This document shows, in pieces, positions 7,674 through 46,232 of a stretch of 64,000 nucleotides of DNA. Numbering within the stretch: the stretch's first letter is position 1; the number at the start of each line of letters is the position of its first letter. The stretch is from Eutreptiella sp. 'Long Island Sound 2002' (Eukaryota; Protista; Euglenida). A program made the position numbers and the translations under genes. The stretch is taken from NCBI GenBank assembly GCA_964036045.1, contig OZ038378.1, forward strand, positions 193,502,001 to 193,566,000, written 5' to 3'. A model generated the notes under the pieces. It was given only the letters and a program-made list of their open reading frames with translations. It was not told where the DNA came from and did not search any database.

Positions 7674-7738
7674 AGTTCTGCCTGCCCCACCCCTCCCCCT
7701 GGACAAAGCAATCAGGACAGATGCACTATTCCACGGAC
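7674..7738. repeat. Element 1 split direct repeat B2 (65 bp; partner B1 at 7948-8012)
   Basis: agttctgcctgccccacccctcccc...tattccacggac is present twice, near-identical. Confidence 0.93.
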
Positions 7739-7803
7739 AACACTGCTGTCCTTTCATCACCCCTGGCAGGCGCCGGGACAAGACACATGGTGGGCGGGTG
7801 GGT

Positions 7804-7952
7804 CGATGTATCCCCGCCTTAAATTATAAAAAGGCTAAGGAGGGGAGGAGGTAGGATGGGAAGCAGGTCCAGAGACACGGGGGGGGGGGGGGGTGCTGGG
7901 GGCCCGGTGGCAGAACTTTCGTTACCCTGCTTCGCTATACTAACTGCAGTTC
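7804..7952. repeat. Element 1 split direct repeat A2 (partner A1 at 12252-12399)
   Basis: cgatgtatccccgccttaaattataaaaaggc...taactgcagttc is present twice, near-identical. Confidence 0.93.
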
Positions 7953-8063
7953 TGCCTGCCCCACCCCTCCCCCTAGACAAAGCAATCATGACGGATGCAC
8001 TATTCCACGGACGGCACATTTTGCCGCGCGATTGCGCGTCCATATGTCCCCGTAGCCGTCGTA

Positions 8064-9503
8064 TCATGAGTCCCCCACCTCCTCTTTGAATCTCCACGGG
8101 GGGCGAATCATCTCCATCAGACCCATGTACTTGGTGTCGACGGCTTTTTCCCACATCTCACGACGCCTTGCTGCTTCGGCAACGGCCTGTTTCGGAGACT
8201 GGAAGCCTGTCTCCCTAGTCAGGGGGTCGGCCGCGTTTAAAAGGGACGGCACCCTGAAGGACTCGACACTAACAGTACTCCAGCACCTTAGCCAAAACAG
8301 GCGCCGGAGTATTCGCTGCTGAGAATCGGCATGCACCGACGCCCTCAGCGCATTGATCTGAGACCTAGCTACGTTGCTGTCTGAACCCACACGAATTCTT
8401 TCAAAACCACGATAGGATGCCACCTTAATGACGATGTACAGCGCCTACAGTTCCGCCTGCTGCAGGGAGTCCACCCAGGGCGGACACACCTCCGATCGAT
8501 AGTAACCCCCCCCCCCCCAACAATCCCCAGTCAAAAATGTTTGCCCTCCGGCGCTGCATCCACGAACACTTCCCAGGCCCCTCGTCCACCAGGCCCTGGA
8601 GGGTCGCACCGCTGAGGGACACAAGAGAATAGGAGCACCGTCGCCACTCCCTTGCAGACCCCCCTACCAAACACTCCTTTCCCACTCTGCAAACCTCGAT
8701 ATGCGCCCGCCAGGAAGGCGCCCAGACCCGCATTGGGCCTGCTCAGCCAGCACAGTTTACCCAGGAGGCGTTCCATAACCTTTGAGGGCAGGCGCCCCCC
8801 GCCCACCCCCCGGATCCACGCCCTGAAGGCACCGACCAAGGCACCCACCGCATTGCTGATTGTCCCAGCCTTGGTGTCAATCTGCTTTCCAATAAAACTG
8901 AGTCTCTCAGTCGGATTTGGTTCGGACTTTGCCCCCACAATAAAACCCGCACGTCTCAGCCTGCGAATGCAGTCCCTCACAGCCCCCCGCAGACGACTCT
9001 TGCTCCTGCACAACAATAAAATGTCATCCAGGTACACCCAACCCCGCACACCACGTCTCGACAAGGCCCCCCGGATAACAGAGGATACCAGCTTTTGGCA
9101 TATCACTGGGCTATAGGCCCTTCCGAATGGCAGCCTCGCATACCGCATACCGGAAACGCCTACCCGACCGCCCCCCAACCACAAAAACACTGCGCCAGGC
9201 GGGGGGGAGGCGGATGCTCCAGTAAGCATTCTGCAGGTCCAGCTTTGCCAGAAAAACACGGCACCTGCCCCCCCCCACACGCCGAGGGCGCGCACGTCCC
9301 ATCCAGTGGCGGATGGCCTCCAGCCCTGGCAGTCGGAATTTCGGGGGCTTCCGGGGGTCGCTTGCGTTGACTCTCCGCGCATCAAGAATGGCTCGGCATT
9401 TGAGCGCATTCTTCCACGTAAGGAACATTTTTGCCGTCTCGGGGCGCTTTGTTCTGCGCAGTCCCTTACTCTCAGTTCTTAGGGACTCCAGCATTGCATC
9501 CAC
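8064..9503 (-). pseudogene. Element 1 reverse transcriptase-RNase H (disrupted); an N-terminal linker extends to ~10100 in the same frame
   Basis: RT motifs KLDLQNAYW, LPFG, VYLDDILL and FIG. RNase H motifs VFVDAA, QQAEL, RVGSDS and RVPSLLNAADPLTR. Disruptions are a 7-bp tandem duplication cataccg (9139-9152), TGA at 8531-8533, a poly-C frameshift near 8510 and a TAG after QQAEL. Confidence 0.9.
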
Positions 9504-9958
9504 GGGCCCCGACTTCCCCCCATGTTACTTTTCAATCCCCGCACTGTCCCCCCGTAACTGCCTCCGGTACACCCCCAGCAAGTCACGAGGAACCAAGGTG
9601 TTCCAGATCTTGTCTCACACTGTCACACATCCCGCTTCCCCCACCCCCCGAGCAGCCATGTCCTCGGTAACCACCCCCTCCTCGTCGCTGCTACTGTAGT
9701 ATCCATCGTCCTCCTCGTCTAAGTCCCCCTCCCCAACTTTTGTTAACACACTGCACAGCGTATCTAGACCCTCCTCCCCACACTCAAGCCTGAGCACCGC
9801 CTCACCCATCCCTGTAATGAGGTTTGTCACCATCTCTTGTCTGTGCACCTTGACGCCCCGCATTTCGCTTATCGCCCTCGCCGCATCTCGCAACCGCCCT
9901 AGAAGCACTCGCACTCGGGGACACTGTCCTACCTCGTTTGCGTGCACCCTCACCCCCC

Positions 9959-10943
9959 TCAGGCGATCCCCCAGCAAGTCGGGAAGCTTCCCCGGCCGCG
10001 AAGGCGATCTCCCGGCGTATCCATGACGGCCAGAACGAGAGCGTGGAGCCCTGCTTCGTGCAGTAGCCCGGCTCTGCCCCCCCCTCCCCCCATAGGCCAT
10101 GGGATTTTTCCCGAGCGGGCAAACTTCCACCTGGGAGGGGCCTCGGTATACATCTGCGCGACTTTCGCTGACTTCCACCCCCCCCCACAGCATAATTGTT
10201 GTGAGCGGTGCCCCCATTTTCCGGAGTTGTGCTGCCCCCATCCTACGGAAGCTATGCCACCGGACAGTCTTCTTTCCCTCCCCCCTCTCCAGCAGGCTGA
10301 CCAACGTTTTCCCCAGCGCCTCCCTGGACTCGTGCCACGCCCCTCTGTCGGGGTGGAATCCTTTGAGCGCTCTGAGTTTTGCCAGGAATTGCAACCAGGC
10401 TCGCACCCAGGGCCCCACTTCCTGTCTCTGGACCCCCCTCCTGGACTTCGTTCCAAAAAATCGCAACCCCTCATCTTCCTGTCCTAGCCCACCCCCCGCC
10501 TCGGAGCCCCGCAGGCAGTGTCCCACCGATATGCACGCCAGCACCACCGCCTCCCATTCTGCGAAGCTAGAGGCAGCCGCACACAGCCTGCACAAGTCCT
10601 CCAGTTGCGCCCACTCCTTCGCCTCCGCCCGCTGTTCCTTGCACCGCCGCTGGTCGATAGACATAACCAAGTACCAATCAGACTTCCGCACCACCGGGGC
10701 AAGCCACGCCATCTTTTCGGCCAGCCTCGCCGCAGCCAGAACGAGCTTTGCGGCGCTCTCTGACAGGTCGCCCTGCATAATCTGCATGAGCCTGGCCTGC
10801 AGTACACCCCGAGCACCGTCGCCTGGTCGCATCCGCTCCAGCCTTGCCAGTCGCCTGAGCTGCCGCAGATACCCGTCGAGGGTACCATCCTGCAGGCCCC
10901 GCACCGTAGTGGCATCAAAATTCGTCCCGTACTCATCAGCCAT
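9959..10943 (-). pseudogene. Element 1 tyrosine recombinase, frameshifted by one extra base in a 9-C run (10178-10186)
   Basis: Motifs CLRGSE, FGTKSRR and WHSFRR. Removing one G restores LWGGWKSAKVAQMY, which supplies the catalytic W and Y from the 9959..10474 frame. Confidence 0.9.
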
Positions 10944-11051
10944 CGCCGCCTCGAGTCTGTCGCGCGCTGCCGCCCACGGCCACTCGCGCTCGCTCTCCTC
11001 GTCGTCCTGCGTGCCCCCTGCAGCCCCGTCTCTAGCGTCATAGCTCCGCAG

Positions 11052-12242
11052 TCATTTCCTTCGGCCTTTACACCCGTGCTTCTCCCTGTCAAACCACCAA
11101 TGGTGGCCACCACACTCCGGGCATGCCGTTTTTGGAGGGTTTTCGCAATTAACCCAGTCTCCTGTCTTCTTGCTGCGGAAGTGGCGCTTTCCATCTATCC
11201 ATTTGAACTCCGGCTAACTTGTGCTCCCCTGCGTGCCACCTCTGCCTTTACGCTTTGAGTGGCGCCCTGATGAGCTGGAGCTTGCTGTAGATGAGGTATC
11301 AGACGCACTGTCGCTGCTACTGTCCGTGGACGACGATTCCGAGTCGGAGGACATGCGCCTCCCTTTTGCCCTTCGAGACGACCGGCGCTCCTTCATCTCC
11401 TTCTTTTTCTCCTTGCGCCTCTGTTTTTTGGCCTTCTTCTTGTTCTTCTTTTTGACCTCCTTTATTTTTGCCTTGACCGCGTCCTTACCGGATTTGTCGC
11501 AATCAAGGAGCAATTGCCAGACATCGTCAATGATCGTGGACACCTCCGTCTCAGTCTCAGACTCCTCGGCCTCCATTAACCTTTCAACCAGGCGGCACAG
11601 TTTGACCGTCCACCTCGGGGCCCCGGGCCTCTTTCTCATCCACCTGGCATTTTTGAAGCTGGGCTCCTTATACGTCAGTTCTTCCTCCTCGCCTTCCTCA
11701 GCGGCGGCCGGCCCCCCACCCCCTTCGCGATCATCGGCTCTGGCGCCCGCCTCCTCGTCCAGGGCCATGCCACTGATGGTCTCGGGCTTTGCGCTCTTCC
11801 CCGGAGAGTGTCTCTCACCCTTGATCCCCACTCCTCCTCTCCTGTTCACCGATTTTCCAGGCGGCTTGGCGATCAAGTCGCATACAGCGAACCCGACGGC
11901 GGCCTCTTCCGCAGACAGGCTGAACGCAGTCACCTCGACTCCCCAGGCAAGTGTCAACCCATACAGCAGCGCGTCAACGTACCGCTGCGGATCAGGGGAT
12001 TGAAATGAGATCCCCAGCGTCTCATGGAAGGTCCTGGCCAGCTTCACCGCACTCCAGCTGACTCCATCCCGTGACCATCCTGCCACGCCCGCCACCAGCA
12101 CCTCTGTGCGATGCTGATGCGGGATCATACGGGCCATCCAGGGCGTGTGAATCAGGTGGGCCCATGCTGTGGATTTTGCTGCGGGGTCTTCGTCTTTTAG
12201 ACGCCTCCAGTCCCATGCCCCATCATTTTTGGCCGAGCCCAT
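11052..12242 (-). pseudogene. Element 1 ORF1 (gag-like) with an internal TAG at 11214-11216 before a C-terminal zinc knuckle
   Basis: The frame continues past the TAG as PEFKWIDGKRHF...PPKTACPECGGHHWWFDREKHGC to TGA at 11052-11054. It lies directly after repeat A1. Confidence 0.75.
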
Positions 12243-12251
12243 TGGATGACC

Positions 12252-12399
12252 CGATGTATCCCCGCCTTAAATTATAAAAAGGCTAAGGAGGGGAGGAGGT
12301 AGGATGGGAAGCAGGTCCAGAGACAGGGGGGGGGGGGGAGTGCTGGGGGCCCGGTGGCAGAACTTTCGTTACCCCGCTTCGCTATACTAACTGCAGTTC
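12252..12399. repeat. Element 1 split direct repeat A1 (5' end on the coding strand)
   Basis: Matches 7804-7952; identity ends at agttc|atacttg. Confidence 0.93.
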
Positions 12400-12660
12400 A
12401 TACTTGAAATAAGGCTCAATACTTTTGGTAGTACAGAGCTTTGCACTGTGTGCACAACAAACCTGCACAGAGTGCCCACACAGCACACGTGCAGTTCATC
12501 AATGTACCCACTTACTATGTCACGTCGCCTCACATATCTGCACATATCTGCATTCTCAGTGAATTGACTACCAAATGCCGCGGTGTGCTTTTGAGAGCAC
12601 CAATCAAATGCACCAACCTGATTCCCACCACCATCTTGTGTGGCAGCCGGCTTCGTTGCA

Positions 12661-13047
12661 TCACCAGTTATCTGAATATGAGTAGGGAGGACTGGGCCAC
12701 GTAAACCCTGCCATATCGGGATCCCTGAATTCCTCAGGGGTGTCTCGGCCTAAAAGATGCACGGTGTGTGCCCATGGTACCGCTCCCCCCATATCCCACA
12801 AATCAATCCCACCCAACCTATCTTCTTTCACACCCCGTACTTGCCCCCACCCTATTGCCCCCATTGATTTCATGTTCCGCCACCACCTCCATGTTGCACT
12901 AGCAGCTTCCTCCTCTGCCCCTTCTTGGGTGGGGAAACAAGCAACAAGGGCAATTGTATCAGTCATGTGCCTCTGAAGTGGTTCCATAATCTCACCGTGG
13001 ACAGCTCTTTGAAACAAGGTCAGCCTTCTCGAGACTCCATCTTTCAA
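12661..13047 (-). pseudogene. Possible non-LTR (LINE) RT C-terminal relic
   Basis: WGQVRGVKEDRLGGIDLWD resembles the W..l..pk..GGLgl.dl motif downstream of LINE RT domains. No other domain was found. Confidence 0.3.
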
Positions 13048-14746
13048 TCATCTACACTTTCTGTGCATGTTCATGCTGAGTGAGCAGAAAACCACACAAA
13101 CGTCTTGGGTATGCCCCTCAAATGCTGCATGCACACAACGAAGCCAATCACATTAAGCACTGCAACTGCCACAGTTGTGTACCCAGGCATTAAGCCCTGA
13201 TATCCAAAGTTTCAGGATAGGGGTTGCAGACGTACTAAACATCAAACAACTGTTGAACAAGCAGCGGTGACGGAGTTCTGCGCATGTTGCAATGCCTGCA
13301 AATGATCTCGGACTGCAGCTGCCAAAGCGCATCTTAAACGCACATGTGTCAAAGGGGGGGGAGGGGGGTTGAAGCTGCAGCAGGATGCTGAGGCTGAAGC
13401 AGGACAGGAGCTGAGAAAGGTTCAGAGTTGAAAAAGTCAATTGGTGCAGTCTGAAATTGTGCACTTTTAGCGTTCCAATAATACAAGAAGAGGGCTCAGC
13501 ATCTGCTCAGCGCTGTGGGCCTGTCCAGCATAGGGGAGCATTTTTGCACAGCTCGGGCCCAGCGCGCACACAGCGCCCAACTGTCAGTGAGCTTTCCCAT
13601 GACCACTGAAAACCACCCACCACCGGGGGAGCTGCGTCCACAGGGCAAAAACAGCAGATTCAGACAGCAATCTTTAGTGGGAATTCTTAGTGGGAAATTT
13701 CGTTTGTTTTAACTCATTGTCTGAGTTTTTGGACTGAGTAAGAATCTGAGCAGTCCTGTGTCTGGGAACACAGTGGTTACTGCGGTCACCTTGGCCATAA
13801 GAGAAAATGGCTCCAAAATAGCCTACTTTTTGCACAGCGCGCGCACAGCGCACGGTGCGCCCCCTAGCAAGCCTAACCCTCATGATGAACCAAAATGGCA
13901 TGGAAAGCAGCATGGCCGGTCCACAAAGCGACAACAGCCGCTGGAATTTCACGAAATGGAGCAGGAAGACACAGGAGTGAAGGCTTACTCTTCAAAGGGA
14001 GACGTCGGTCATCAAATAGGGCGCTGTTAAGCATTTTTATAATGAAAGCATTCCAAATCCGTGGAACAAACAGGGCACTGTAGTGCCACGGCCACTCAGC
14101 TGACACCCCCAACCCCAACCCTCCAGCCCGCTTGACTAGGGCCGTGGAACCAAAGAGCAGGGGGTTTTATAGCCAAACGCAAATACTGAGAAAGGACTCC
14201 AAATGCTGAGATGCTGTGCAAACAGTGCACACGGACAAAAGAACACAAAACATTGGATCATCCGTTTGGAAGCATAAATGTGAGGCCATCTGCCTGAAGC
14301 CCACTTCGCGTGACATTGTCGTGAATCCCCATGCAAGGGTGCCATAGGGCTGGACAATGCACACACAAGCTCCGTGTGCTGGAGGGCCACCGGAAATAGA
14401 ACATAGAAAATTGGGCTCTGGTGTTTGCAGTGAAGGACAGTCCCTGACACCGAAATGAAAAAACTGCCGAACTGTGTTATGCTAAAGCCTCAAGAACAAG
14501 GGGGCAGCAGAATCTGGAAGTGCAGGTTTGGGGCACCTTTTCGCTGACAGCGGGTGGTGGTTAACCTACGTTCCCGACAGGTTACAATATGGTTGGTGGG
14601 CTATTGGGGTGGAATGAAATGTCATGTAAGGTAACCCTTCCCCCCCTGGAACTGCCCCCGGCTGTGGCAGGCGGCAGCCAAAAACGCAACAGAATTGCGA
14701 TCCTTCTGAACCGCCCTGGTCCCTGCACTTTGTGGCTGCACGTTAC

Positions 14747-15178
14747 TTAGTTCTGACCAACCCGGGCCACAATGATGGTGATGTCATTCTTCTTGCCACC
14801 GCGATATTCCACCCCGGCCTCCTGAGCACGCTTTGCAAATGGCGACAAGTAGCCTGTGTTACGGGCATTCTTAAGAGCCTGCTCCTTCAGCATGCCGGCA
14901 ATGCTTGGCAAGGACTTACCCTTCGCCGCAGACACCATGCGCGTGATGTCAGCCTCAACGATATTGTCCAGCAGACCATCAGTGCCCATCACCACAAGGT
15001 CCCCTGGTTGGGTCTTGAACATGCTCTGGTGGCTCATAGTAGGCAGTACCAAATTCTCTGGGTCGCCATGGGTGCTGAGCTGAAGTGGGACATTCCAGTC
15101 GGATCGCAAGGCTTCGGTGCGGTGCACGCACTCAGTGCCACGAATCACCAGGAGACCACTGTCACCGAGATTAGCCAC
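14747..15178 (-). CDS. PP2C (PTC7/PBCP-like) phosphatase, exon 3 of 3
   Basis: Acceptor attcag|GTG; encodes VANLGDSG...GDLVVMGTDGLLDN...GGKKNDITIIV and ends at TAA. Phase 0 matches the end of exon 2. Confidence 0.93.
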   Translation of the reverse strand: MANLGDSGLLVIRGTECVHRTEALRSDWNVPLQLSTHGDPENLVLPTMSHQSMFKTQPGDLVVMGTDGLLDNIVEADITRMVSAAKGKSLPSIAGMLKEQALKNARNTGYLSPFAKRAQEAGVEYRGGKKNDITIIVARVGQN

Positions 15179-18100
15179 CTGAATGCATGCAGGTTGTGTC
15201 TGGCAGGGATTCCATGACTAAACATGTCAATCTGAATGTGCACATCTTTGGAATCTTGGAACTTGTGTCTGGACTGACATTGGTCTGAAAATGCCTACAC
15301 TCCATTGTTCATTGCCATCCCGCTTTTTTACCTCTTTTACTTTTTTGCCTCTCAAACTTCGCCAAATATGCAAGGGGGTGGGGGCCTTCCCTTACCTGCA
15401 AGAGCATGGATGCCAGTGTTAAAAAAAAATGCATCATGCATGTTTGCAATGACACATAATGCCAATGATTCACCACATGACTAGTGGGTGGTCGTTAGAC
15501 AGTGCTTTAAGGCAAGTGGGTGGTCGTTAGACAGTGCTTTAAGGCAAGAAGGTGCCATTTAATCAGGACCTGTCATTGGACAGTACCATGAATACTTCTG
15601 CAGCCCAGGAAATTCTCTCCGCTGGAGGTTTGTGACCAAATCAGGGCAGCCCCCTTGTGTACCTACCAGGACCACCTGGTGAGGAGACAAACATTTGCAA
15701 AGAATAAAGCACACAACCCAGAGACAGCAAATCACGCACTTTGTGTGTGCCCTGGTCTCCGTCCCTGTCTGTGTCCTTCTTTCATTTGTTGTCCATTTCC
15801 TCTCGTAAAATTTCGAAAACCATTTCCAGCCAAACTTCCGGTGAAACAAAAAAATCAACCCCAAACACCCGTCTAGTGCCTTGTGAGCCCGGCTGTACAC
15901 ATTGACGTCCACGAGAAAATATTGCAGCCATCTCCACTTGTGCACATGCATGTTTGTACTTTAATTGTGCTTGTTTCGGGGGAAAACCAAATATTCAAGA
16001 AATGAGACTTTCTAGGGGGGGTTACAATTTGCCGCCAGGGTGGGCGTTATGGGCGAGAGACTTTCATCAACCGCATTACCATATGTACAAGGCAGGACTC
16101 GAACACGCCCCCCTAGGCCGCACGCAAAGGTGTGTGGCCACTCTACTATAACGATGCTGAAGCAAAATGTGCACATGATCAAAGCAGGAGGGGGGCACTC
16201 AATGACTGGTAGTGACCGAATCCCCCCACCACCACTGCACCCAAATTGGTGGTGAACCTGGTACGTGCTGGCAGTAAGTAAACACACGTTGCTGAGCTCA
16301 AAGCCAGGTCCCACGGGCAGGGGCCCAGGTATGGCACCTCTCTACTACGTCTTATGTCATGGCCAAAATTCAATCCTTGGGCTGTATTGGTCATCATCCC
16401 CCCACAAAACCCGATTCGCCCAATGCGCTGAGACTGCCCTGCTGCTATAATATATCCCTCCAGCACTGAGCCGTACAACTCATGGTCCATAGACCCCCAA
16501 CTGTCCCCACTATTGCTGTCACTCTTTTCCCCCGTTTCCTGTAGCTCAGTCAGTCCTTGTTGCTCCCATATTCCCTCTACCACGACCCTGCCATCCTCAT
16601 CAGACATTGAGCCATCTGATCGTGCATCTAGGTATGTAGACGATCCTAACCCCAAACCATCCTCCGACCCATGCTCTGGCAGCTCCCCCAAATACCTCCC
16701 CTAGCTGCCTAGGATGCATGCTTGTGGGCGACAGACTCCCCCACCCCCTTGCCGCCGCCTGCAAAGGGTGGGAACATGGCACCTCTAGGGCCAATCATTC
16801 TACTCCATTCTACTCGCAAACACGTTGTAACCCTTACCCAGGGTCCTAGTTTTGCAAATGCCAGCTCTCGTTGTAGGTCCATTCACTCCGCTAATTGCGG
16901 CCACCGGTCCACATTCAACAAGGGGCATGATGAGGTTAACCATTATTGTTGCTCCCATTGCGGTATTTTACCACCCATGCCCGCCAACACTTAGTCAGAC
17001 TGCAAGAACAAAAGGAGCTTGTTGCGTCCCATTACTACAAGCTCACATCACGTACTGTGATGGAGGGGGGGGGGGGGTTTGGTGGATGCAAAACTTGGTG
17101 CAGACAAAGTTTGGCACCCATCCTAAAATCCTGAAATCCTAAAGGGGGGTACAAAATTCCGAAACTGTGGCACAATAAGCATAGACTAGGAATGGTGGTT
17201 GATATTTCCTATGGGCCTTTGGTTGGCAATCATCTCATGGAGGCTTTTGGATGCTTGTTGGTGCTACAGACATATTGTAGCAGCTCCAACTAGCCTGCTA
17301 TAGTGTCCTTGAGAGTCCATGTCTTTTGCCCACGGCCAACCCTTACAAGGACACATCATGATGGGAAAATCTGCAGCTTGGCCCTTCAAGCCTAATACCT
17401 ACAACCCCCCCACCCACCCACCCTGTTCAGACAGCCCTCCCCCCCCCCCGGAGTTGCAATGGACCGGCTGCCCTAAAGTACCCGTGTTATCACCAAATGA
17501 TGGTATTGCCCACCAAGGTGCAAATATGTACAAAGCACTTGGGCACTACTGGGAGGGCCTGATTGGTGCTACATGGCTCCCCGTGGGTTTATTTTTGGTT
17601 GTTGGACATGGGGTCTATTCAGACAACTAACGGGAAATTCTGGAGGTAGGGGTATGTTATACCTTTCAAAATCTCCAAGGAAAAGGCTTTTCGGAATGAT
17701 ATGGGCGGGGGGGGAGGGTTCCGGAACCATATTTTTGTGAAATTTGGGGCCCTGAAGTTTGATGGTTCGAGCATTTTGGGGTGTCTTACACGCCACATCA
17801 CACAGGCCTCAAACGGTGACTCCATGATAGTATTGAGTTGAGCAAAAAGCAAAGTAGTGTATCTTATGCAGTGTTTTTTGCATAGAATCCAAATCTTTTA
17901 TGACCCGGGTCTCAACTCCACAACATGTTGTAGAAAATTTGCATTGATCCTCTTGCAGGTAGACTCTAGACTCTAGACTCTGTTGAACATCCTGTGCAAT
18001 AGTGCTGCTGCCCCGCATTGGGTTTCACATGTTCACCTTGCGAGGCCTAAATCTCCAAAATATCGTTTCAAAACGCAAAAGTGAAAGGGGTGGGTTTTTC

Positions 18101-32062: not shown

Positions 32063-32286
32063 CTTAGCGGCAATCAGAGATGCGTTTCCACTCAACATCA
32101 GAGTAGAACCAGCGTTGAAGCCGTACCATCCCAACCACAAGATGAGGGTACCAGTGCACAACAACACTTGATTGTGGGGACGATAGCGAGTCTCACGGAA
32201 TTCCTTTTCCTCCTCGCTCTCGCCTGCAGGTCCAAACCGCCCTCGCCGGGGTCCAATGATCAGAGCACCAACGAAGGCACCAACCC
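32063..32286 (-). CDS. amt: Ammonium transporter copy A, exon 3
   Basis: Boundaries gcacag|GG ... AAG|gtgtgc; encodes GPRRGRF...GTLILWLGWYGFNAGS. Confidence 0.95.
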
Positions 32287-32438
32287 CTGTGCAGAACAGA
32301 ATAATGAAGGGTCCAGTGGCATGCGACCTGAGAGTCTGAGTACCCTAAATGCACAGTGATGAGCACTGACAGGTGGCAAGCCGCAGTGCCGTGGTCACAG
32401 AACCCGTATTATCACACATGGTGAGGCAACCGACACAC

Positions 32439-32764
32439 CTCCAGTCAAGTGCACTACTCCACTTCCAGCAAAATCGATCATTCCATTGGTTCCAACACGA
32501 CCAAATGCTGAGGTGTCACAGAAGGCACTGAGCCAGCCAGCGCCGCTCCAGATCCAGTGCACCACCACAGGGTAAATGACAGCAGTCATAGCAATGGAGA
32601 CAATAATGTATCCCCCAACAGCACAGCGCTCCGCAACAGCTCCAGAGATGATGGTTGCGGTGGTTGCTGCAAAAGCCCACTGGAAGAACCATCCAGCAAA
32701 GGCGGTGTTGGGGAAGTGTCCGCTGGAGACGAGGAAAAACTCACCGCCGCCGATAAAGACGTTC
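32439..32764 (-). CDS. amt: Ammonium transporter copy A, exon 2
   Basis: Boundaries tcgcag|G ... GGAG|gtgtgt; encodes FFQWAFAAT...SGAVAER...YPVVVHWIW...[13 protein letters not shown]. Confidence 0.95.
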
Positions 32765-34301: not shown

Positions 34302-34578
34302 GGAATTATGGGAATTATGGGGAATTATGGGGGAATTATGGGGAATTATGGGGGATTATGGGGAATTATGTGGAATTATGGGGGAAGTACGGGGAATTAT
34401 GGGTAATTATGGGGAATTGTGGTGGAATTATGGGGAATTTGGGTGGAATTATGGGGAATTATGGGGAAGTATGGGGAATGTTGGTGGAATTACGGGGAAT
34501 GTTGGTGGAATTATGGGAAATTATGGGGGAATTATGGGGGAATTATGGGGAATTATGGGGAATTATGGGGAATTATGG
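34302..34578 (+). repeat. (GGGAATTATG)n-type ~10-mer array
   Basis: Directly visible; the complementary array lies at 35574-35682. Confidence 0.95.
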
Positions 34579-35573
34579 CTTGGTGTTGATTCTTGATGGG
34601 TTGTTGTTCGTTCCCGATGGCTTGCTTTTGATTCTTGCCGGGTTGCTATTGATTCCTGTTGCTTTGTTCTTGATGCCTGTCAGCTTGTTGTTGATTCTTG
34701 ACTGGTGCCCAGTTGCTATTGATTCTTGCTAGTTTGTTCTTGATTCCTGGTGGCTTGCTATTGATTCCTGATGGGTTCCTTTTGACTCTTGCGGGGTTGC
34801 TGTCGCATCCTGCCAGTTTAATCTTGATTCCTCGTGGGATGGCTTGGAGGAACAAAGGCAAGCACAATGCACATGCACGTGAGGACGCAGTGGAACAAAA
34901 TCACGCGGCATCATTGTTGGATAAGTCTTTAAAGTCTTAAAGTCTGGTGGCCACTGAGCACTCTCCTTTGCACGGGTGCGAGGCCCATCGTGGGCCTGCC
35001 CTAATAACCACTCAACCTCCTCCTCCTCCCCTCCACAGACATGTCAGACTTTCATCCTCACAACAATGTTCTCTATGTGCGACTCTCCTACCTATACAAG
35101 GCACCCAAAGAATACATTTCTCAGGGGCAGGTGGTGAAGCAAATGAAGAAATTGAACATCAAGGCACTCAACCGCAGTGACATTGGGCTTAGTGGTGCTG
35201 GGGGCCGTCGTGGTGGTGCATGGATGTCGTGCGCTGCTGCATTAAAGGTTGTGCCACCCGGACACCGTGCTGCCTATGCATCCGCTTTTGATGAGGTTGC
35301 GACTGCTGCTGGTCTACAAGGTAGTGGCATGCCTGACGCTACTGCTGATGGTGTCACCACCTGCAACTGCAAATGCTATGACTGCAGACAATGCTGCTGA
35401 CGACCCTCCTGAACAACCTATTGCGCCTCCTGCTGTTCCACCTCGTGACACTCTTGCTGCACCTGATGACACTGTTGCTGCACCACATGGCAGTATTGAT
35501 GATGATGAGAAGCAAGGGGCCACACGACGACAACAAACAACGATCACCAACACAAGAAATGACATCCCAAATT

Positions 35574-35682
35574 CATAATTTCACCATAATTCCCCATAAT
35601 TCCCTCATAATTTCCCCACAATTCCACCATAATTCCACCCAAATTCCCCATAATTCCACCATAATTCCCCATAATTCCACCA
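35574..35682 (-). repeat. Inverted copy of the GGAATTATGG array (ccataattcc)n
   Basis: Directly visible; opposite orientation to 34302-34578. Confidence 0.9.
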
Positions 35683-35759
35683 ATGTGACGGGACAACCAA
35701 CAACTGTTGGACAAGCCCACTATAGCCTTTAGGAATTATGGGAAATTTCCCCACCACCG

Positions 35760-37270: not shown

Positions 37271-38325
37271 CCACCTGCACCAACTGGCCAAATGGTGTGA
37301 AAACCATATCACAAACGTCTTAAACATGCTTTACATGGGATATTTGATGATTGTGGGTGGTCAGGGGAAATTCTATTGCCTTTGGCACTCATCTTGCAGA
37401 GAAATACCCACACAACAGTCAAAATGCTCAGAATAAAGTTCTGTATCACCCCCCACCACCACCACTGTTTGCGCTCCTGTAGAGCTGCAGGGCACTCCAC
37501 CGTTACAGAGTGCTTGCACTCCGCACTCAAGGTTATTGCCGGCTGGATCCTTAATTTAATGTGCTGGTGCCACTACCTGCCACCGATGGAGAAACAACAG
37601 AAACGGTGTGCCAACACAGCAGCATGATGGATCTTGGAGAATGGCGAGGGGCCAATAGGTGCCGCCGACTGCCTGGAGAGCAGCAACATCTAAGGGCTTT
37701 GTCCCAACAACCCCCCCCCCCCCCCCCCCGCAACACACACAAGGGCACAAAGTGGTGAGAGGCCGATGGGCGCCGCCTCCTGCGCCACGTACTGAGTGAA
37801 AGGGTTCAAGGAAAAGGCAACGGTAACTGGCAAGATGCCTATGGGCGCTCCCGGCTGCAGACAGCAATACCACCAGGCATGGTGCCAAACCACGACCCGA
37901 CGTGTAAGAACACGGTAACAGCACGCAGACCAACGGAATCAATGCCTCCTGTTGGTCTGACAGGTATCATCTTGTTCGCCGTGCGTCATCTGCCCCCTTG
38001 AATTGAAGCCGTGTGACAGGGGAATGCTCGGAAGCAGTGTGAAAGGGAGGTGCCATGGTGCAGTGCAGGGCCTGGCCCTACTGCACTGTTTCTGGTTGAG
38101 CCTTTTTCTGAAATGCTTTGTATGGCGTCATTGTTGCCACTGAGAGCGTCCTCAATCAAATGCATGTCAGAGAGCTGCTGTACAAGCTCTGGTGAGCTTT
38201 TCTTTGGACTTTAGGTTGTGTCCGACCATCAACTGTTGGGTCCCTCCGCGCGCACGCACGTGCACACACACTCACGCAGAGTCCTTCCTCTGGCCATCAA
38301 CCAGCGACGTCAGAAACCCACATAC

Positions 38326-38642
38326 CTGCCACCGGAGACCGTGTCGCCACCGTAGGCAAGCGCCCAACCAATAGCCCACCAAGACAAAGCGGCGCAGCAG
38401 GCATCCATGGAATTCTTGAAGACAATGTTGACAACGTTTTTCGCCCGGCAGGAACCACATTCCAGCATTGTGAACCCAGTCTGCATGAAGAAAACCACGA
38501 TGGCGCACAGCATCAACCAAAGTGTGTCCAAGTCAGCGTTGGTCATAGGGTTTCCCGCAGTCTTCAAGGTGTCAACCTCTTGCTGCAACGCGGTAACTTG
38601 GGCCGTTAATTCGGCCCACGCTCCAGCTGAGACAATAGCCAT
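38326..38642 (-). CDS. amt: Ammonium transporter copy A, exon 1
   Basis: ATG at 38642 starts MAIVSAG...FFMQTGFTMLECGSCRAKNVVNIVFKN...WWAIGWALAYG. Donor AG|gtatgt in phase 2 matches exon 2. Confidence 0.93.
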
Positions 38643-38660
38643 TTTGTCGGTTGCGGCAGT

Positions 38661-38680
38661 CTGAAAACAGAAAATGCACA
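38661..38680 (-). promoter_or_regulatory. Candidate (trans-)splice acceptor 18 nt upstream of the Amt A ATG (same site in copy B at 56221)
   Basis: gcattttctgttttcAG|actgccgcaaccgacaaaATG is present in both copies. Confidence 0.5.
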
Positions 38681-40175
38681 ACTTAAGCACTACCAGTGAC
38701 GTGCTGGAAACATTGGGTTCTGCAGGGGTGGTGTGCAGGGCAGGGCCAGTGCAGTAGCTGTCCCAGGAGTCCAGTGTGCCTGCTGTGGGCGCAGGGGCAA
38801 CGGAGTCATCCAAAAATGAGTCACACTTGGCCTGACCTGATGGCACTCAACCAAAGATGGCTGTACAATTTCCCTTGCCACTGCAAAAAACCAGATGCCC
38901 CCGCCCCCCCCCCCCAAATGAAGCATATCTGCACTGTCTCTTCCCATCCCTGCCCATCCTACAGAATACTGCTCTTCGATGCTTCTGGATTTGATGAGCT
39001 CTGCAACAAGGGTGTTTCTAGCCGGTGACCAGCCACTTTCTCATCTAACTTATCGCCAATTCATTTCTAGAGCCATTCCCTGCCTAGCAGGAATTGTACT
39101 TCATGGAAAGATGCTACCAGATGGTGGTCCGCCTTGCACGAGTTGGCAGTCCTACCCTGTAAGCACCCGTCGACACAGCTGCATGCACCACCAGCATTGG
39201 AGCCAGTAGTGGTGTTGTATGCCTGGGTGGTGCAGTAAAAGGGACAGCCCCAATGGCAATAGACTCAAAGAGGCTATTCACAAGCCTTGGAGGATGGTTT
39301 GGTGGTATAATGAATGTTTTTCCACCTGGTGCGGCGCCCACTATAAACAAAAGTGGTAGCCCCAAACCTGGGGCTACAAAACCCACTGCGCCCTACCCGT
39401 GATACGTTCAACATGTTTCAGTGCCAGGGGCTGTACCGCCGTCCTGGTCGCTGCCGCTACAACCAATCACATGAGTTTCTTGCAGTCCACAGTGCATCTG
39501 GATTATACGGAGCATATCTTGGACTACATGTGCCCTGTTTGCCTTCACCAATTGAATCAATCAGCCTTCCCATTCACCTCATATTGTATGCATATGTAAT
39601 CACCAGGGCATTGTGAGGGGCCCACAATAGTAGCAAGTACCCGGTCATTTGCACTGTTGCAGTTGTAGAAGTCAGGGATACCGGCACGAACCCAAGACAA
39701 TGACATTGTGTTGCTGAGCTATAGACCAAGGAATAGCATGTACAATGCAATGCTGAGGGCATGCAAGGTGAAATGGGGCACCAATTAGCAACACGGCACC
39801 TCACCAGGCAACAACAAAATACGACAATGGTGTTTGGTAAAAGATCGAAATAAAAAAGATGCAAACAAAATACGACAATGGTGTTTGGTGAAGTATCGAA
39901 ATAAAAAAGATGCATAGTGTGCGCACGGTGCGTCCCACTCACGGGGCTGCTGCCAGCCAATGTGTGACCCCGAGGGGTGTGCAACCGTTTTGGGGGTGGG
40001 TGGGGTGCCCCCCCCCCCCCCTTCGTTGACCCAAACCTTGGGGGTCAACGGGTCTCGGGGGTCGACGGTTCTAGGGGGTCGGGCAGTCAGCGGCCGGGCT
40101 CCCCGGGGGGCCATGAGGCAACGGATACTGGGCTCGCATACGCCCCCGTGTCACAGGCGCATGGTCATCACCACA

Positions 40176-40394
40176 TAGTTTAAATTGTTTTTCCCCCCAT
40201 GGGCTTGGCACTTGCTGCTTCGCCCCACCAAACCCCATGCACCTCCTTCCACCTCCCCTCACTGCCATCCACGCAGCACACGAGACAACAGTGCACAGTC
40301 GTGGACATTGCTGAACCCAAAGAACGTAGTGTCGCGTGACCATTTTGCTGCTGTGCCGGCGACACCATCCGTCACCACCACCACCAAGGAACAC
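40176..40394. repeat. Element 2 split direct repeat B2 (partner B1 40793-41011)
   Basis: tagtttaaattgtttt...accaccaccaaggaacac is present twice, near-identical. Confidence 0.95.
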
Positions 40395-40690
40395 GTGGTG
40401 GTGCGGGTGGTGCATGGTAGGGGACATCCACGGTCCCGATAGACGTTTATACAACACACATATACGTTGGTCCATCGCCTGTGCGACGGTCGCGCCTGTA
40501 CCTGTGCCTGCGGTGGGCGGTGGTTCTCCCGTGAAACGTGTCACGGCCCCATCGGGGCCGCTCGCTGGCGAGTTGCTCTGTGCCCCTGCGCCACACTTCG
40601 CCCCGCGGCCCTTGCGACCCTTAGCCACGCCTTGCGCGCTCACCCACGCTCGTCCGGCACGCGCCCGGTGTTTTAGGGAGGGGGGGAGGG

Positions 40691-40797
40691 CGACGGCACA
40701 CCACAAAACAAACAAACACTATGCGAGTGTTCACGAGGTGCCCTCCTCCCACCCCCTTGCCCAATTTAAACTCAAGTTTACTGCATAAACTTTAGTT
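40691..40797. repeat. Element 2 split direct repeat A2 (partner A1 46126-46232)
   Basis: cgacggcacaccacaaaacaaac...taaactttagtt is present twice and appears identical. Confidence 0.95.
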
Positions 40798-41037
40798 TAA
40801 ATTGTTTTCCCCCCCATGGGCTTGGCACTTGCTGCTTCGCCCCACCAAACCCCATGCACCTCCTTCCACCTCCCCTCACTGCCATCCACGCAGCAGACGA
40901 GACAACAGTGCACAGTCGTGGACATTGCTGAACCCAAAGAACGTAGTGTCGCGTGACCATTTTGCTGCTGTGCCGGCGACACCATCCGTCACCACCACCA
41001 CCAAGGAACACAAAAAAATTACTCAAAATCACCCTTC

Positions 41038-41694
41038 TTACTGAGGCTGGCCCACATCTCCACTTGCGCTTGCCACCTCTCCGTGCCCACCCCCCTCTTG
41101 CTGCACTTCCCGCATCACCGCGGCCACCGCCCGCACCATAGCCGGCGAACCGGCGGCCCAAAGTCTTTGTGTCCCCGGCGGTAGTCGTGGCCCGTGTTTC
41201 AGCTTTTCCACCGTTACGGAGACTCGTACGCCGTGTGTCGCCCCGGTCCACTCTGGGATGAAGACCGCTCGCTCCATGGAGTGCGTTCCCTGCGGCTTTC
41301 CTTCGACCTTGCGTTGCGTCTCGCGCTGCCATGTTGCCTCGACACGTCTGCACAATCGCATCACGACCGGAAAGCGCTTGCTTTTCGCCAGCTCTGGTGT
41401 GACCGTCCACGTTCGATATGACACGCTCGCCACCTCGCATACTTCTTCAAACCTGTGAGCCGCCACCAGTCTATCGTCTCTTCGCCCCCGCTTAGCCGCC
41501 ACCTGCGCCGCATCGCGCTGTGCGCCGCCGGCTCGTGGCATGTGTAGCGCACGTGTCGCCGCAAAACAAATTCTGCCACGAGCAGTGCACAACACTCCCC
41601 TCAACAGCCCAAGCACTTGCTGCCGGGCCCACGCACGACGCTCACGCACACCCACCGCAGGCTCACCACAGGTTCGCAGACTCACGGCCCGCAA
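41038..41694 (-). CDS. Element 2 ORF4, 218 codons, unknown function, in frame immediately after the RNase H stop
   Basis: Open frame between the RH stop (41695-41697) and repeat B1; there is no ATG at the 5' end and no recognised domain. Confidence 0.4.
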   Translation of the reverse strand: MRAVSLRTCGEPAVGVRERRAWARQQVLGLLRGVLCTARGRICFAATRALHMPRAGGAQRDAAQVAAKRGRRDDRLVAAHRFEEVCEVASVSYRTWTVTPELAKSKRFPVVMRLCRRVEATWQRETQRKVEGKPQGTHSMERAVFIPEWTGATHGVRVSVTVEKLKHGPRLPPGTQRLWAAGSPAMVRAVAAVMREVQQEGGGHGEVASASGDVGQPQ

Positions 41695-44212
41695 TCAGAA
41701 CCGCAAGACGCCCCAACATTCTGTCTGAGTGCAAACAGGTAACAAATCTGCCATTTGGTCGAAGGCAGACCCCGGTGCCATGCTCTTGTCACCAAAAAAA
41801 TTGCTGCGGACCCGAGACAGGTAGTCCGCCGGCATGATGGCCCCGGGTACATACGAAAGGTGTACCGAAGTCCCCCCCTTTGCCAGAGCATACATTACTT
41901 GTCGAACACACCGACGCTGCTCCCGCAGCCCAATTCCCACTTTCCCTGTTCTCAGGCCCCAGAGCACCCCTTGGTTGTCCAGATGCAGCGTAGCCCACGG
42001 GAGTTTCCGTCCCACCACCGATTTTACGGCCGCAGCCGCCCCTCGAAATTCTAGCACCTGCTGGTTCTGCAGCGGCACACGCAGGGAGTGGTGTGCTCCC
42101 GCCGATGAGCACATACCCAGCCTGCCACTATTTCCGTCTCGCGCCGCGTCGGAGTACACCTGCGGGCACAGCCCCTTTGGGGGCGGGGGGGGGGGGGGGA
42201 CGTAGGAGGCCACCAGCCCCTTCCCGCAAACCACAACGCACCCGACAGCGACCGCAGAAGGTTTGTGGGCGGGCGCGGCATCCATTTTGCGCCCCACTGC
42301 ACGTGCGCAATGGGCCCCGCCAGAAATAGGTTTGACCAATGCGACGGCCTGCAGGCCCAGATCAACTTCCCCACCACCCGCTGGACGGACTTTCGCGTAA
42401 CCGGCCTGGATGCCATCAGCACGTACCTACTCAGGGCATCTTCCAACGTGTGCCTGGTGTTCCGAATGACCCCCCGCCCAAAGTCGACATGCTTGCCCAA
42501 AAAGACTAGCTCCCTCTCCGGCCGACTGGACGACTTGTCACTGATGAGGAATCCAGCGTTTGCCAGAACTTCCTTGAACTCCGCCAGCTTTGTGGCGACG
42601 GCGGCCTCGGAGTCGCCGAACACCAGAAAATCACCCAGGTAGTGCATGAGCCGCAGCACCGCCCCTGCCACCTCCAGCCCCACCTTCCCCGTCAACTGTG
42701 CCAGCAGTCGCTGACACAGTAGTGGACTGTAACTCCAACCAAACGGCAGCGTCTTAAAAACCCACATGCACTCCTCCCCCCCCACACGAAACAGGTGGCT
42801 CTTCCCCTCGGGCAGCAGTATGGACCAGTAACAATTTGTGACGTCAATGTTGGCCCCCCAGCCACGCAGCCCTTGCGAAAAAACCTCCGCTAAAGACTCT
42901 ACTTGAGGCAGGCTGACACGCGGCACCTTGTACCCGCCCTCCCACTGCCTCTGGTTGGCACGCACCCCGTGCAGGATAAGCCGCGCCTTGGTCTCATTCT
43001 TGGGGATGGTGAAGGCAGCCGCCGTAGGCACCAGGGAATGCCCAAGGCATCCGCCTCCTGCTTCGACGGTTGCTGCAGTGCCCCTGTCCTTGCAATGGCG
43101 CTGAGCATGTCAGCCGTGGGTCCCCGCACCTTCCGTACCTCCTCAGCAGACGATAGCAAAAACTCCTGTTGCGGACTGACATAGATCTGCCACAGCCACT
43201 CCGGCAGCGGAACCGCACCCACGGATCCTATCCCTTTTTGGGCTATCTCAGGAGTCACCTCACCTTCCGGCACGGCGGGGTAAATGCCGTCCAGCAATTC
43301 CCTAAACCCTTCCATGACCATGGCCTCGCACAGGTGCATCCATGTTAGCAGTGGCTTGTCGTCTCTCAAATCCTCACTCAACTGGAACACCTCTCTCCTG
43401 AACACATCCAACGCCTTGTACGCGCGTCCCTGCTCTACACCCCACTTTTGCGCAAAACGCAGCGAAAGCTGATACATGGTCTCTCGGAACCTGGCCTTGG
43501 AGGGCCGGCCCGCCCCAACGGTAGGATCAGACGTTACCCCCGCCCCGACACGACACACGCAGGCCACGTACGACGCGCATACCACCGCAACCCACCACAC
43601 CCGCGAAACCAGTCGCACCAGTACCGCCAACAAAGCGCCAAACCCGCCTACGCACAGCCACAGCTCTCCACTAAGTGGTGGAGGAGTAAGACGAGTAGGA
43701 CACGCTGCCGGTGGCTCTCCGCACTCGCTTGAACTCCCCCTGTGCTCGGGCCTCCTCAGCGCGTACTCTTTTGAACTTAGGGACAGTGCAAGGGGGTGGG
43801 GGCTTCCTCTGTGGGTCGGCAGTCGGAAGGAGTTGACTCGGTCGAGGAGGCCGGCACTTGCTGCCCACCGCCCCGAACTTGTCGCGCCCCTGTCGAGCTG
43901 CCACCCCCGTTGCCGGGCGCCTGCCTGTGCTTGGCGAGCTGTCCCTTCGGTCGCAGTTTGCCCCCCGCCCCGCCCTGGGCCGCCGTCGAATTCCCAGCGT
44001 GCCTGTCGGCCCCGGGCATGGTCCTTGAGGGCCCAAAGGCCACATGCTCCTTTCTGTGCTTCCACTGCTGTCGTATCCCAGACGGCCAGAGCTGCTCGAG
44101 TCGTAGGGACGTCGTGCGGCTGCGCCACCTGCCTCCAGCTCCCTCTCAGGGGGGCCGCGGCCAGAAATCCTCCGCTTGCACGGGCTGCGTTTCGGTCGGA
44201 TGCGCGTACCAC
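41695..44212 (-). pseudogene. Element 2 ORF3: linker-RT-RNase H, with two homopolymer frameshifts and a YLDD to YLGD change
   Basis: RT motifs AFTIPK...ARLI, IDVTNCYW, LPFGWSYSP, HYLGDF and FLG. RNase H motifs VYSDAA, QQVLE, HLDN and YVPGAIMPADYLSR. Frameshifts lie at ~43035 (C-run) and ~42190 (G-run). Confidence 0.92.
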
Positions 44213-44998
44213 CGCGCGGTGGAGTCACGCGCCCAGCGGCCCCACACGGCAACCTGCCGGATTGTGGCCCCAGCCGTCCACATAGCCCGAGCTCCGGCTC
44301 TGCGCCACGCGTGCCGGCGGGCACCCTCAAACGGGGATCCGACGAGGAGGCGTTGCATGCCTTTTTCCAGCTGTTGTGTCGTCCACGGCCGTCTTCCTTC
44401 CGCCGCCGGCTCTGGGAAGTGGCGCTGGAGCCACTGCAGCCACTCCCTTGTAAGCGGCGTGAGTGACCTCTGTTGCCAGTCCTGCCTCGTCTTGGAGTCG
44501 AAGAACCGCACCGCGTCATCAACGACCGCCCAAGGTTGTAGGGTGACTGCCTCTCCGACGCGCAGGAAGAGCTGGAACAAGACGATTGCCAGCCCGACCA
44601 CTGCCCAGTCCTCCAGGCTGCTGGTCCTTGCCGCCATGTGTAGCAGTATGATCGGGGATCCCCAGATACGCTCTTTTGCCGCGTTCCTTGTCTTCTTCGC
44701 CGCCTTGACGGATCTCCAGATGGTGGTCGGGATGCACGCGTCAACCAGCCGCACCTCTGTCGCCATAATGGCTGCGCTGATGATCCCCTTGATTGTGCTC
44801 TCCGAACTTCCCCAATCGGGCGCACTCCAATATGGTCTGCTCCAGGACCCGCTCCTTGGCATCACATGGGAACCGCTGCTCGACCGCCGCCAGCCTGCGT
44901 AGGTGACACTGGTATGTCCCCAATGACGATTCTTCCCATCCCAGCAGGACAAACGTCTGCCAACTGTGCAGAGCGTCTTGCGTGCGTAGTCTCTCCAT
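44146..44998 (-). pseudogene. Element 2 tyrosine recombinase, one frameshift near 44815
   Basis: Motifs FLRVGE, DSKT, HAWRR, GRW and ARWY. The N-terminal GWEESSLGTYQCHLRRLAAVE aligns with element 1 GLQDGTLDGYLRQLRRLARLE. Confidence 0.92.
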
Positions 44999-45100
44999 CT
45001 TCTGGAGGGCCGACCCCCAACCGTCCCCTCCACGGGCACTTGCTGCCCCCCTGCGCCCGCCGCCCCGTTGGGCCCCGAGGCGGCGGGGGCCCCCTTCCGT

Positions 45101-46117
45101 TCAGTCGCTCTCGACTAGGCACTGGAACCACCAGTGCTTGACTCGGCACACGTCGCAGGGATATCGCGGGGGCTTCCCTGTTTTGAGCACCTTTCCGCCT
45201 TTGGACTCGTACGTTTCCTCGGGTGTTCCCATGTTGGTGAAGCGGTCCTTCACTCGCTCCCTCCGCCTGTCCTGCACGTGCTGCGGAGCCAATTTTCCCG
45301 TCTTCGGCCTGGTCTTCGCTCCCTCCTCCTTGAGGTTCGCCTTCTCCGAGCCCCTGGCCTCGTTTGCTCCGTCCGCGGCTCGAGCCTCCAGCTGCGCCTT
45401 GACTTCTTCCTTTTCGACCTCGAACAGCAGGTGGGACCACACTTCGGACAGGGCCTTCATGCCCGCCTCGTACTCAGACTCCAGCATGCTTTGCAGATTC
45501 TCCGCCGCCCAGCCTGCCATCGCCCCCGCCATCGCTCTCGCCCAGGCAGGTTTCGCCTCGTTGGCCTCCATCTCCTGTCCTGCCTCCAGTACGAAAATCA
45601 CCTGCCGCAGCTGCGGCATTGCCTTGGACGCTCAAAGCTCTTGTATCGTTTTTAGTTGTTGCTCCATTACGAGCTTCATGTCTTCCATTTCTTGGCGCAT
45701 TTTCTCGATGTCCGCGTGCACCCCTTTGTCGTTTGGCGACCCGCTGGCACTGGAGTTGCCCCCAATTGACACCACGTCCGCGGGGTTCTTCTCCGGGGTC
45801 CCGTTCCCTGCGATCACTTGGGCATGCTGTGCTGACATGTAGAATGTGCAGTCGTTCCAGTTGAAGGTCCGCTTGTGGAGGGTCCCGAAGGCCACGACTT
45901 GCTCGTAGATGCCCTCCATGGATCCCTTCAGTCCATACTTCTGTCTCAGCCGATCTGCCGGTTCAACGGTATCGATTCCCGCTGTCTTTGCCGCCGTCAC
46001 GAGTCTGTCCGTGTCTTGCTGAAGCGTAGACGCGTTTAGCAGTTGCGTGGCCAGTTTATGCTGGCCCTGCTCGAGGTAATCCTCAAAGCTGATCGGCTGG
46101 TTCTCAGACTCAGGCAT
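45101..46117 (-). pseudogene. Element 2 ORF1 (gag-like) with an internal TGA at 45632-45634 and a C-terminal zinc knuckle
   Basis: ORFs 45632..46150 and 45101..45619 share one frame; it ends PPRYPCDVCRVKHWWFQC. Confidence 0.8.
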
Positions 46118-46125
46118 GGTCAGGA

Positions 46126-46232
46126 CGACGGCACACCACAAAACAAACAAACACTATGCGAGTGTTCACGAGGTGCCCTCCTCCCACCCCCTTGCCCAAT
46201 TTAAACTCAAGTTTACTGCATAAACTTTAGTT
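46126..46232. repeat. Element 2 split direct repeat A1
   Basis: Matches 40691-40797; identity ends at tagtt|cagtg. Confidence 0.95.

Follow-up and report, generated by a model that had tools for sequence, protein, structure and literature searches.

Do retrotransposons that carry a tyrosine recombinase integrate at a fixed sequence in the genome of Eutreptiella sp. 'Long Island Sound 2002'? The question is raised by a stretch of 64,000 nucleotides from this euglenid (GCA_964036045.1, contig OZ038378.1, positions 193,502,001 to 193,566,000), hereafter the window, in which two such elements, both on the minus strand, interrupt the same heptamer, TAGTTCA, in the same orientation: element 1 at 7674-12399 (4726 bp) and element 2 at 40176-46232 (6057 bp). 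A sequence-only reading of the window had proposed that this lineage possesses a conserved 7-bp target comparable to an att site. Had a retro-integrase of eukaryotes proved to use such a fixed 7-bp target, it would have surprised the field and been of note as a candidate tool. The conserved target is, however, refuted by the comparison reported here, because all of the 13 other insertions defined in the same genome lie at different sequences. With a probability that we put at roughly 0.8, elements 1 and 2 represent two divergent lineages of a single group with the layout of the VIPER and TATE elements, each by a copy with a disrupted frame, and the identity of their targets is a coincidence helped by a degenerate preference, rather than the mark of an att site. 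They are new elements of an established kind, acting in a known way. Since such behaviour is ordinary for this order of transposons, the claim of a 7-bp target should not be carried forward.

Two insertions in one heptamer

Along the plus strand, both elements follow the order B2 - spacer - A2 - B1 - coding region - A1; read in the sense direction, this becomes A1 - open reading frames (ORFs) - B1 - A2 - spacer - B2, an arrangement of split direct repeats. In element 1, the 3' terminal repeat B2 (7674-7743, minus strand, as are all features of both elements) is a direct repeat of B1 (7948-8017; 93-95% identical), A2 (7804-7952) is 98% identical to the 5' terminal repeat A1 (12252-12399), and a unique 60-nt spacer outside both repeat families (7744-7803) separates A2 from B2. 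The corresponding parts of element 2 are B2 (40176-40394) and B1 (40793-41011), A2 (40687-40797) and A1 (46122-46232), with 99% identity for both pairs, and a unique spacer of 292 nt (40395-40686), again outside the repeats. The junctions of element 1, given on the plus strand with slashes around the overlap, read gtgcT/AGTTC/tgcc on the left (7674-7678), actgc/AGTTC/tgcc internally, where B1 meets A2 (7948-7952), and actgc/AGTTC/Atact on the right (12395-12399). Those of element 2 read ccaca/TAGTT/taaat (40176-40180), aactt/TAGTT/taaat (40793-40797) and aactt/TAGTT/CAgtg (46228-46232).

Removal of element 1 gives gtgcTAGTTCAtact and removal of element 2 gives ccacaTAGTTCAgtg. The reconstructed empty sites thus read ...GGTGCTAGTTCATACTT... 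and ...CACCACATAGTTCAGTG..., both containing TAGTTCA, which for these minus-strand elements corresponds to ..TGAAC/TA.. in the sense direction. Repeats, junctions and empty sites therefore bear out the observation from which the question started, namely that both elements sit in an identical heptamer and face the same way. The two are also as different as had been stated: their terminal repeats are dissimilar, no BLASTN similarity is found between their DNA, and their proteins share 28-31% identity. Given AAC, identity at the other four positions of the heptamer has a per-pair probability of about 0.001 under background composition and about 0.005 under the observed column frequencies. It is this small chance, together with the common orientation, that speaks for a conserved sequence-specific heptamer used by the lineage in the manner of a phage att core. 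On the other hand, TAGTTCA occurs four times in the window, both strands counted, against an expectation of 4.5, and three of these occurrences are unoccupied.

The repetitive nature of the flanks offers another way to account for the match, in which each element would have inserted into a copy of a single dispersed repeat of the host, one that by chance contained TAGTTCA. The left flank of element 1 is partly repetitive, and the flanks of element 2 are contiguous in a paralogous repeat of 90% identity in a second locus of this genome (L002, 3439-3539), which fixes the ends of the element within ~3 nt. The flanks of the two elements, however, show no BLASTN similarity beyond the heptamer, and at the insertion point the paralogue reads ACCACAATCAGTG, without TAGTTCA; we consider a common host repeat extremely improbable. 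Because of this same reading, the exact pre-insertion bases of element 2 are not recoverable from L002. The bases immediately to the left of the two sites, GTGGTG(c) at 7665-7673 and CACCAC(a) at 40167-40175, are mutual reverse complements, which is treated here as a coincidence.

Fifteen insertion sites and the target they share

Further copies were obtained from a same-genome comparison assembly (ENA ERZ25074135), in which the window is part of the 2.5-Mb contig ctg10908_37x_l. Eleven new loci of ~21 kb each (L002-L009 and L013-L015) were taken from it, the split repeats were located in each locus by self-BLAST, and every site was established through a three-way comparison of the 5', internal and 3' junctions. 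Thirteen further insertions, from both window lineages and from a third one, were defined in this manner, so that the sample comprises 15 sites with the window copies. In the sense direction, with 5' flank, overlap and 3' flank in that order, the sites of the element 1 lineage are tat GAACT agc (window), aag AC gtg (L005), ttg AC aat (L006), agt C atg (L007), ggt AAC ttt (L008), cat AAC act (L014) and cac C ttt (L009). Those of the element 2 lineage are ctg AACTA tgt (window), tga AAAC acc (L002), ctc AAAC atg (L003), agc AAAC acg (L013), gca AAAC gca (L015) and tat C gtg (L004), and the third lineage contributes ttg ACA agg (E4) and aac C gcc (E5). For the L013 insertion the empty site is given directly by an uninterrupted, 97.7% identical copy of its host element, and reads GAGCAAACACGTG.

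TGAACTA is present at two of the 15 sites, both of them in the window, and at none of the 13 new ones, which match between zero and two of its four positions outside AAC. The sites that lack it include those of three element 1 and four element 2 subfamily copies with 91-98% DNA identity to the window elements. All that the other insertions have in common with the window pair is C, usually extended to AC or AAC. Together with the vacant heptamers of the window and with the absence of homology beyond chance in the bases 3' of AAC, these figures make a conserved 7-bp target a very improbable source of the shared heptamer.

What the sites do share is a short and asymmetric motif. Target position 0 is C in 15/15 cases (G on the window plus strand) and is the only invariant base, position -1 is A in 11/15, and position -2 is always a purine (A in 11 cases, G in 4). 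Expressed as a match to the element end, C agrees in 15/15 sites, AC in 11/15 and AAC in 8/15. The adjoining positions -4, -3, +1 and +2 are A or T in 44/60 instances (p=6.5e-6), against ~46% A/T further out. The total information of the target amounts to ~6 bits uncorrected and to ~5 bits after a rough small-sample correction, where a fixed 7-mer would hold ~14. The target thus approximates to (A/G)AC with A/T-rich bases close by. That 13 related copies share only (A/G)AC points to the ordinary loose targeting of this transposon class, and not to a site-specific integrase.

The element side of the reaction is far more constant than its target. Each of the 15 insertions has its breakpoint at the very same base, immediately behind the terminal AAC of B, and every junction is composed of AAC, three variable bases and AGTT (A positions +4 to +7). 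Five junction types can be told apart, with repeats that are otherwise unalignable: AACTGCAGTT, a 10-nt palindrome, in element 1, AACCGCAGTT in L008 and L014, AACCTTAGTT in L009, AACTAAAGTT in element 2, and AACACTAGTT in E4 and E5. The inverted motif AAC...GTT is the best candidate for the core site of the recombinase. The element 2 junction also lies within a near-perfect palindrome of 43 nt (window 40762-40804), centred on TGCAG, which as single-stranded DNA folds with -15.9 kcal/mol (z=-5.4). Considered as a common property of the junctions, such a hairpin was discarded: it is strong in element 2 and absent in element 1 and L009, and hence is no shared requirement.

Homology between target and junction is confined to one side. 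It extends over a mean of 2.5 nt 5' of the C, compared with 1.28 nt for random C positions (P=1e-4), whereas 3' of the C the mean of 0.29 nt is indistinguishable from the 0.32 nt expected (P=0.62). This one-sidedness places the exchange point directly after the C, and homology of 1-4 nt restricted to the 5' side of the crossover explains why no target-site duplication is seen and why the apparent overlap with the element junction varies from 1 to 5 nt across the 15 insertions. The extra matches of T in element 1 and of TA in element 2, from which the look-alike overlaps of 5 nt in the window arise, are at chance level.

These results divide the original interpretation in two. Its assignment of both elements to the tyrosine-recombinase retrotransposons holds, on the evidence of their reverse transcriptases and recombinases, and so does the lack of a target duplication. 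It was likewise right that a short core, found at both ends and at the internal junction, marks the crossover, and this core (AAC in sense, GTT on the window plus strand) is kept across divergent lineages. The conserved att-like heptamer has to be given up, and with it AGTT as a target core shared by the insertions, given that the T located 3' of AAC matches only as often as chance predicts.

A plausible mechanism follows the published model for the order. Reverse transcription would restore a molecule that has the end of B linked to the start of A, with the internal B1/A2 junction as template; this internal junction would represent the ends as they are connected for integration. The recombinase would then exchange strands between this B/A junction and the chromosome (PMC3266345, PMC6681497, PMC7192593). 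A circular intermediate and an active recombinase enter this scheme by analogy with described members of the order. For DIRS-1 itself linear single-stranded cDNA intermediates have been reported (PMC7192593), and host end-joining of linear cDNA through microhomology, with the recombinase left unused, would also produce overlaps of variable length such as the 1-5 nt recorded here. End-joining should, however, leave ragged ends, in place of a breakpoint that is base-identical in 15 insertions and a conserved AAC-N3-AGTT junction, and the catalytic residues are kept in most recombinase copies. It seems to us an improbable route.

A more serious contender posits an extended degenerate preference, approximately WWRAC/WH (the slash marking the point of exchange) or more, of which TGAACTA would be one favoured instance and TTGACAA another, the match in the window being then partly causal. 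TTGACAA forms a second pair of identical heptamers among the 15 sites, found at L006 (6724) and E4 (L014, 2041), that is, in an element 1 subfamily copy and in the third lineage. In simulated 15-site samples, at least one identical pair appears in 14% of cases if RAC alone is imposed and in 38% with empirical columns, and at least two pairs in 0.9% and 8%, respectively. Two pairs hence exceed what a bare RAC model yields (P=0.009) and are marginal even when the A/T context is included (P=0.04-0.08), so that some further degenerate target preference may exist; the A/T-rich bases beside RAC are in line with it.

This excess weighs against a largely coincidental match, and three other points must be set beside it. 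The 15 sites come from presumably some hundreds of copies and were chosen via protein clusters, in a non-random way; L006 and L013 each carry one changed base near the junction, and post-insertion mutation could be blurring a few junctions; and the linear intermediates mentioned above sit uneasily with the circular form of the mechanism. Nonetheless, the ~5 bits of information and the lack of any fixed flanking position argue against a more extensive target, and with empirical columns the finding of two pairs is no great surprise (P=0.08); the sample, too, is small. We therefore regard a causal share of the extended preference as possible but doubtful, and read the shared heptamer as the product of a real but weak context preference together with chance.

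Coding regions and affinities

The order of the ORFs is the same in both elements and in all full-length copies retrieved: gag-like, tyrosine recombinase, reverse transcriptase (RT) and RNase H-like. ORF pieces of broken genes were searched separately by reference, with no joined or spliced models and no read-through of stops. In element 1, the gag-like ORF1 (11214-12242; 342 aa, with a basic serine-rich tail) is assigned by position only and matches no Pfam family; it precedes, in sense, a recombinase ORF of 442 aa recognized through alignments (9615-10943). The RT of this element (8531-9503; Pfam RVT_1, E=5e-10) is divided between two ORFs that overlap but differ in frame (9111-9503 and 8531-9409), and an ORF of 119 aa (8064-8423) aligns with the D..E..D..ADxLSR region of relatives and is accordingly named RNase H-like.

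Element 2 has a gag-like region of two ORFs without a Pfam family (45101-46150, comprising 45632-46150 and 45101-45619), the second of which displays a zinc-knuckle-like motif, CX2CX3HX4C. Its recombinase ORF (44146-45039; 297 aa), identified by alignment, retains the R..K..H..R..W..Y set and matches Pfam Phage_integrase with E=6.7e-5, under the curated cut-off. Between the recombinase and RT ORFs lies a further ORF (42899-44212), without a Pfam family, whose C-terminal part resembles, by tblastn, the N-terminal part of a long RT ORF in the relative L003. The RT ORF itself (42051-43031; 326 aa) matches RVT_1 with E=2e-11, and an RNase H-like ORF of 214 aa in a different frame (41695-42339) contains the motifs SDAA, QQxLE, LDN and PADYLSR.

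In both elements, and in relatives as well, RVT_1 scores exceed the curated cut-off, and the structural model of the related RT protein P0029 matches the RTs of foamy virus, Moloney murine leukaemia virus, cauliflower mosaic virus, Ty3 and HIV, with E-values down to 4e-12. For the recombinase, Phage_integrase matches were obtained in three lineages (E=7e-5 to 4e-4), all under the curated cut-off, and the K, H, R, W and Y residues are invariant across nine aligned sequences, the first Arg being invariant in an alignment of eight and kept in most of the nine. The model of the L005 recombinase, with a mean predicted local distance difference test score of 70, matches Cre, IntI, XerA, lambda Int and Tn1549 Int with probability 1.0. 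The scanned ORFs contained no integrase or endonuclease family and no methyltransferase family. The RNase H regions had no Pfam or PDB sequence match, and the C-terminal 280 residues of P0029, where model confidence is below 50, are apparently an out-of-frame read of that region; the assignment thus rests on the D..E..D..ADxLSR motifs, which suggest that an RNase H-like region is present.

Both window copies are frame-disrupted. The recombinase of element 1 loses its frame across the conserved W...Y catalytic segment when compared with relatives, as seen from tblastn frame changes against L005, and downstream of its recombinase ORF element 2 has three ORFs in place of the single long one of L003. 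The recombinase ORFs of the L003 and L005 copies, in contrast, are uninterrupted. Within the element 2 subfamily, the RNase H-like region and RT occupy different frames in at least the window copy and L003, and L002 and L013 look alike in this respect; a 75% identical relative, L004, has both in one ORF (P0003). The frame change may be either a shared defect of a trans-mobilised lineage or a programmed frameshift.

The features that define the order DIRS are all present, namely an RT, a tyrosine recombinase in the place of a DDE integrase or endonuclease, and insertion without target duplication. [quoted passage not shown] A further similarity, for VIPER deduced from the ~30-bp exclusive region of SIRE, is the short unique sequence that separates A2 from B2. 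Unlike VIPER and TATE, the closest relatives looked up here are unnamed metagenome proteins. The hosts may be compared as well: kinetoplastids are intron-poor, and in the present genome an ammonium-transporter gene is split over several ORFs, which speaks against a kinetoplastid, and a Rae1-like gene is intronless.

Other members of the order agree in some respects and depart in others. The Ngaro and PAT-like elements also possess split direct repeats, a replication model built on them and a recombinase next to RT and RNase H, and Ngaro likewise lacks a methyltransferase domain. Poulter and Goodwin are said to have reported in 2005 that the recombinase of Ngaro and PAT lies downstream of RT and RNase H, an order unlike the one observed here, with the recombinase upstream of these domains and between the gag-like and RT ORFs. 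DIRS1-like elements integrate, as do those of Eutreptiella, at a short sequence identical to their end junction and without duplication: a 3-bp junction recombines with the identical genomic 3 bp, and the trinucleotides listed for DIRS1-like elements of fish and hemichordates include GTT/AAC (Piednoel et al. 2011, PMC3266345). The match in Eutreptiella is looser than this exact trinucleotide, and the inverted terminal repeats, internal complementary region and methyltransferase domain of DIRS1-like elements are not seen, the repeats being direct and split. The phage-type integrases, such as lambda Int with attP/attB and Cre with loxP, have the same catalytic fold and residues, and the element site resembles theirs in its short inverted AAC...GTT; unlike them, no identical overlap of 7-8 bp links donor and target, and specificity is limited to ~5 bits.

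The diversity of the group is considerable. The RT ORF of element 1 has 42 clusters of relatives at 45-100% identity, with one outlier at 32%, and that of element 2 has 14 clusters, one with 68 members, all in the same assembly. A library search with P0029 returned 1449 relatives at E<0.001, in which the top entries are fragments, apparently of the same family, and the more distant full-length matches are ~30% identical. Twenty of the more distant representatives were looked up; they stem from metagenome or Logan assemblies, and among them no informative name (three are labelled 'hypothetical protein') and no accession was found. A scan of JGI metagenomes with the A-repeat pattern of element 1 gave no match, and one with a 20-mer of the element 2 A repeat gave three short contigs (L010-L012) that were treated as chance matches because they have no similarity to the elements.

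It may be, and we advance this only tentatively, that these lineages constitute a large, diverse and undescribed branch of VIPER/TATE architecture outside the kinetoplastids, whose recombinases read the AAC-N3-AGTT junction together with an asymmetric WWRAC/WH target through one-sided homology. If so, this would depart from the classical need of tyrosine recombinases for an identical overlap region. What the analysis contributes are 15 base-resolved sites for VIPER/TATE-like elements, a base-level target description not met in the literature compared here, a crossover located directly after a conserved AAC with homology on one side, and a junction core kept across lineages at only ~30% protein identity. 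The presence of many diverse unnamed lineages in one eukaryote retains an interest of its own.

Nested copies and other features of the loci

Several of the sampled loci bear on the habits of these elements. The third-lineage element E4 (6.4 kb; L014, 2041-8421), with ~30% protein identity to both window elements, lies inside an element 1-type copy, so that elements insert into one another. L013 holds a nest of recombinase elements (2200-16700), in which a partial element of a third type, E3, contains the 2.2-kb split-repeat element E5 (3451-5694) and a 3'-truncated element 2-type copy (7418-13352), the latter flanked by a direct duplication of 1.4 kb of E3 (5991-7421 and 13353-14764; 97.7% identical). 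E3, counted as a sixth lineage, has a defined 5' end and was excluded from the set of sites because no B2 was found in L013. The element 2-type copy of L002 (6085-6368, 12425-12507) sits inside a 25-bp minisatellite whose adjacent units have, for the most part, GCAC in place of the AAAC seen at the insertion; before insertion, the site may hence have matched the junction over AC only. L007 (7023-10971) and L015 (7156-12167) contain copies that lack A2 and B2 and are reduced to A1 - internal - B, the product expected if B1 had recombined with B2. For an AAA ATPase encoded in L009, the search gave homologues that are only ~35% identical and mostly bacterial-type CDC48-like, and an Rfam scan of 150 kb gave no match.

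The window as a whole contains protist-style repeats and GC-rich retrotransposons. Three direct copies of ~4.5 kb (28722-33179, 49223-53698 and 58172-62787; 97-100% identical) encode, on the minus strand, the C-terminal half of an ammonium transporter (ORF 30099-30719; Pfam Ammonium_transp, E=5e-48). A piece of the N-terminal part is situated at 55870-56571, at a distance of several kb, and has a DNA repeat of 99% identity at 38247-38546; the ensemble resembles a host gene that was amplified in tandem and has introns or insertions. Positions 34298-34851 and 35574-35683 hold a G-rich array with units of 10-11 bp (GGGGAATTAT), behind which comes an array of 21-bp repeats, and, ~1 kb downstream, an inverted copy of the G-rich array. 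Three 48-bp tandem repeats (7086-7231) lie ~440 bp to the left of element 1, and related repeats occur at several other loci.

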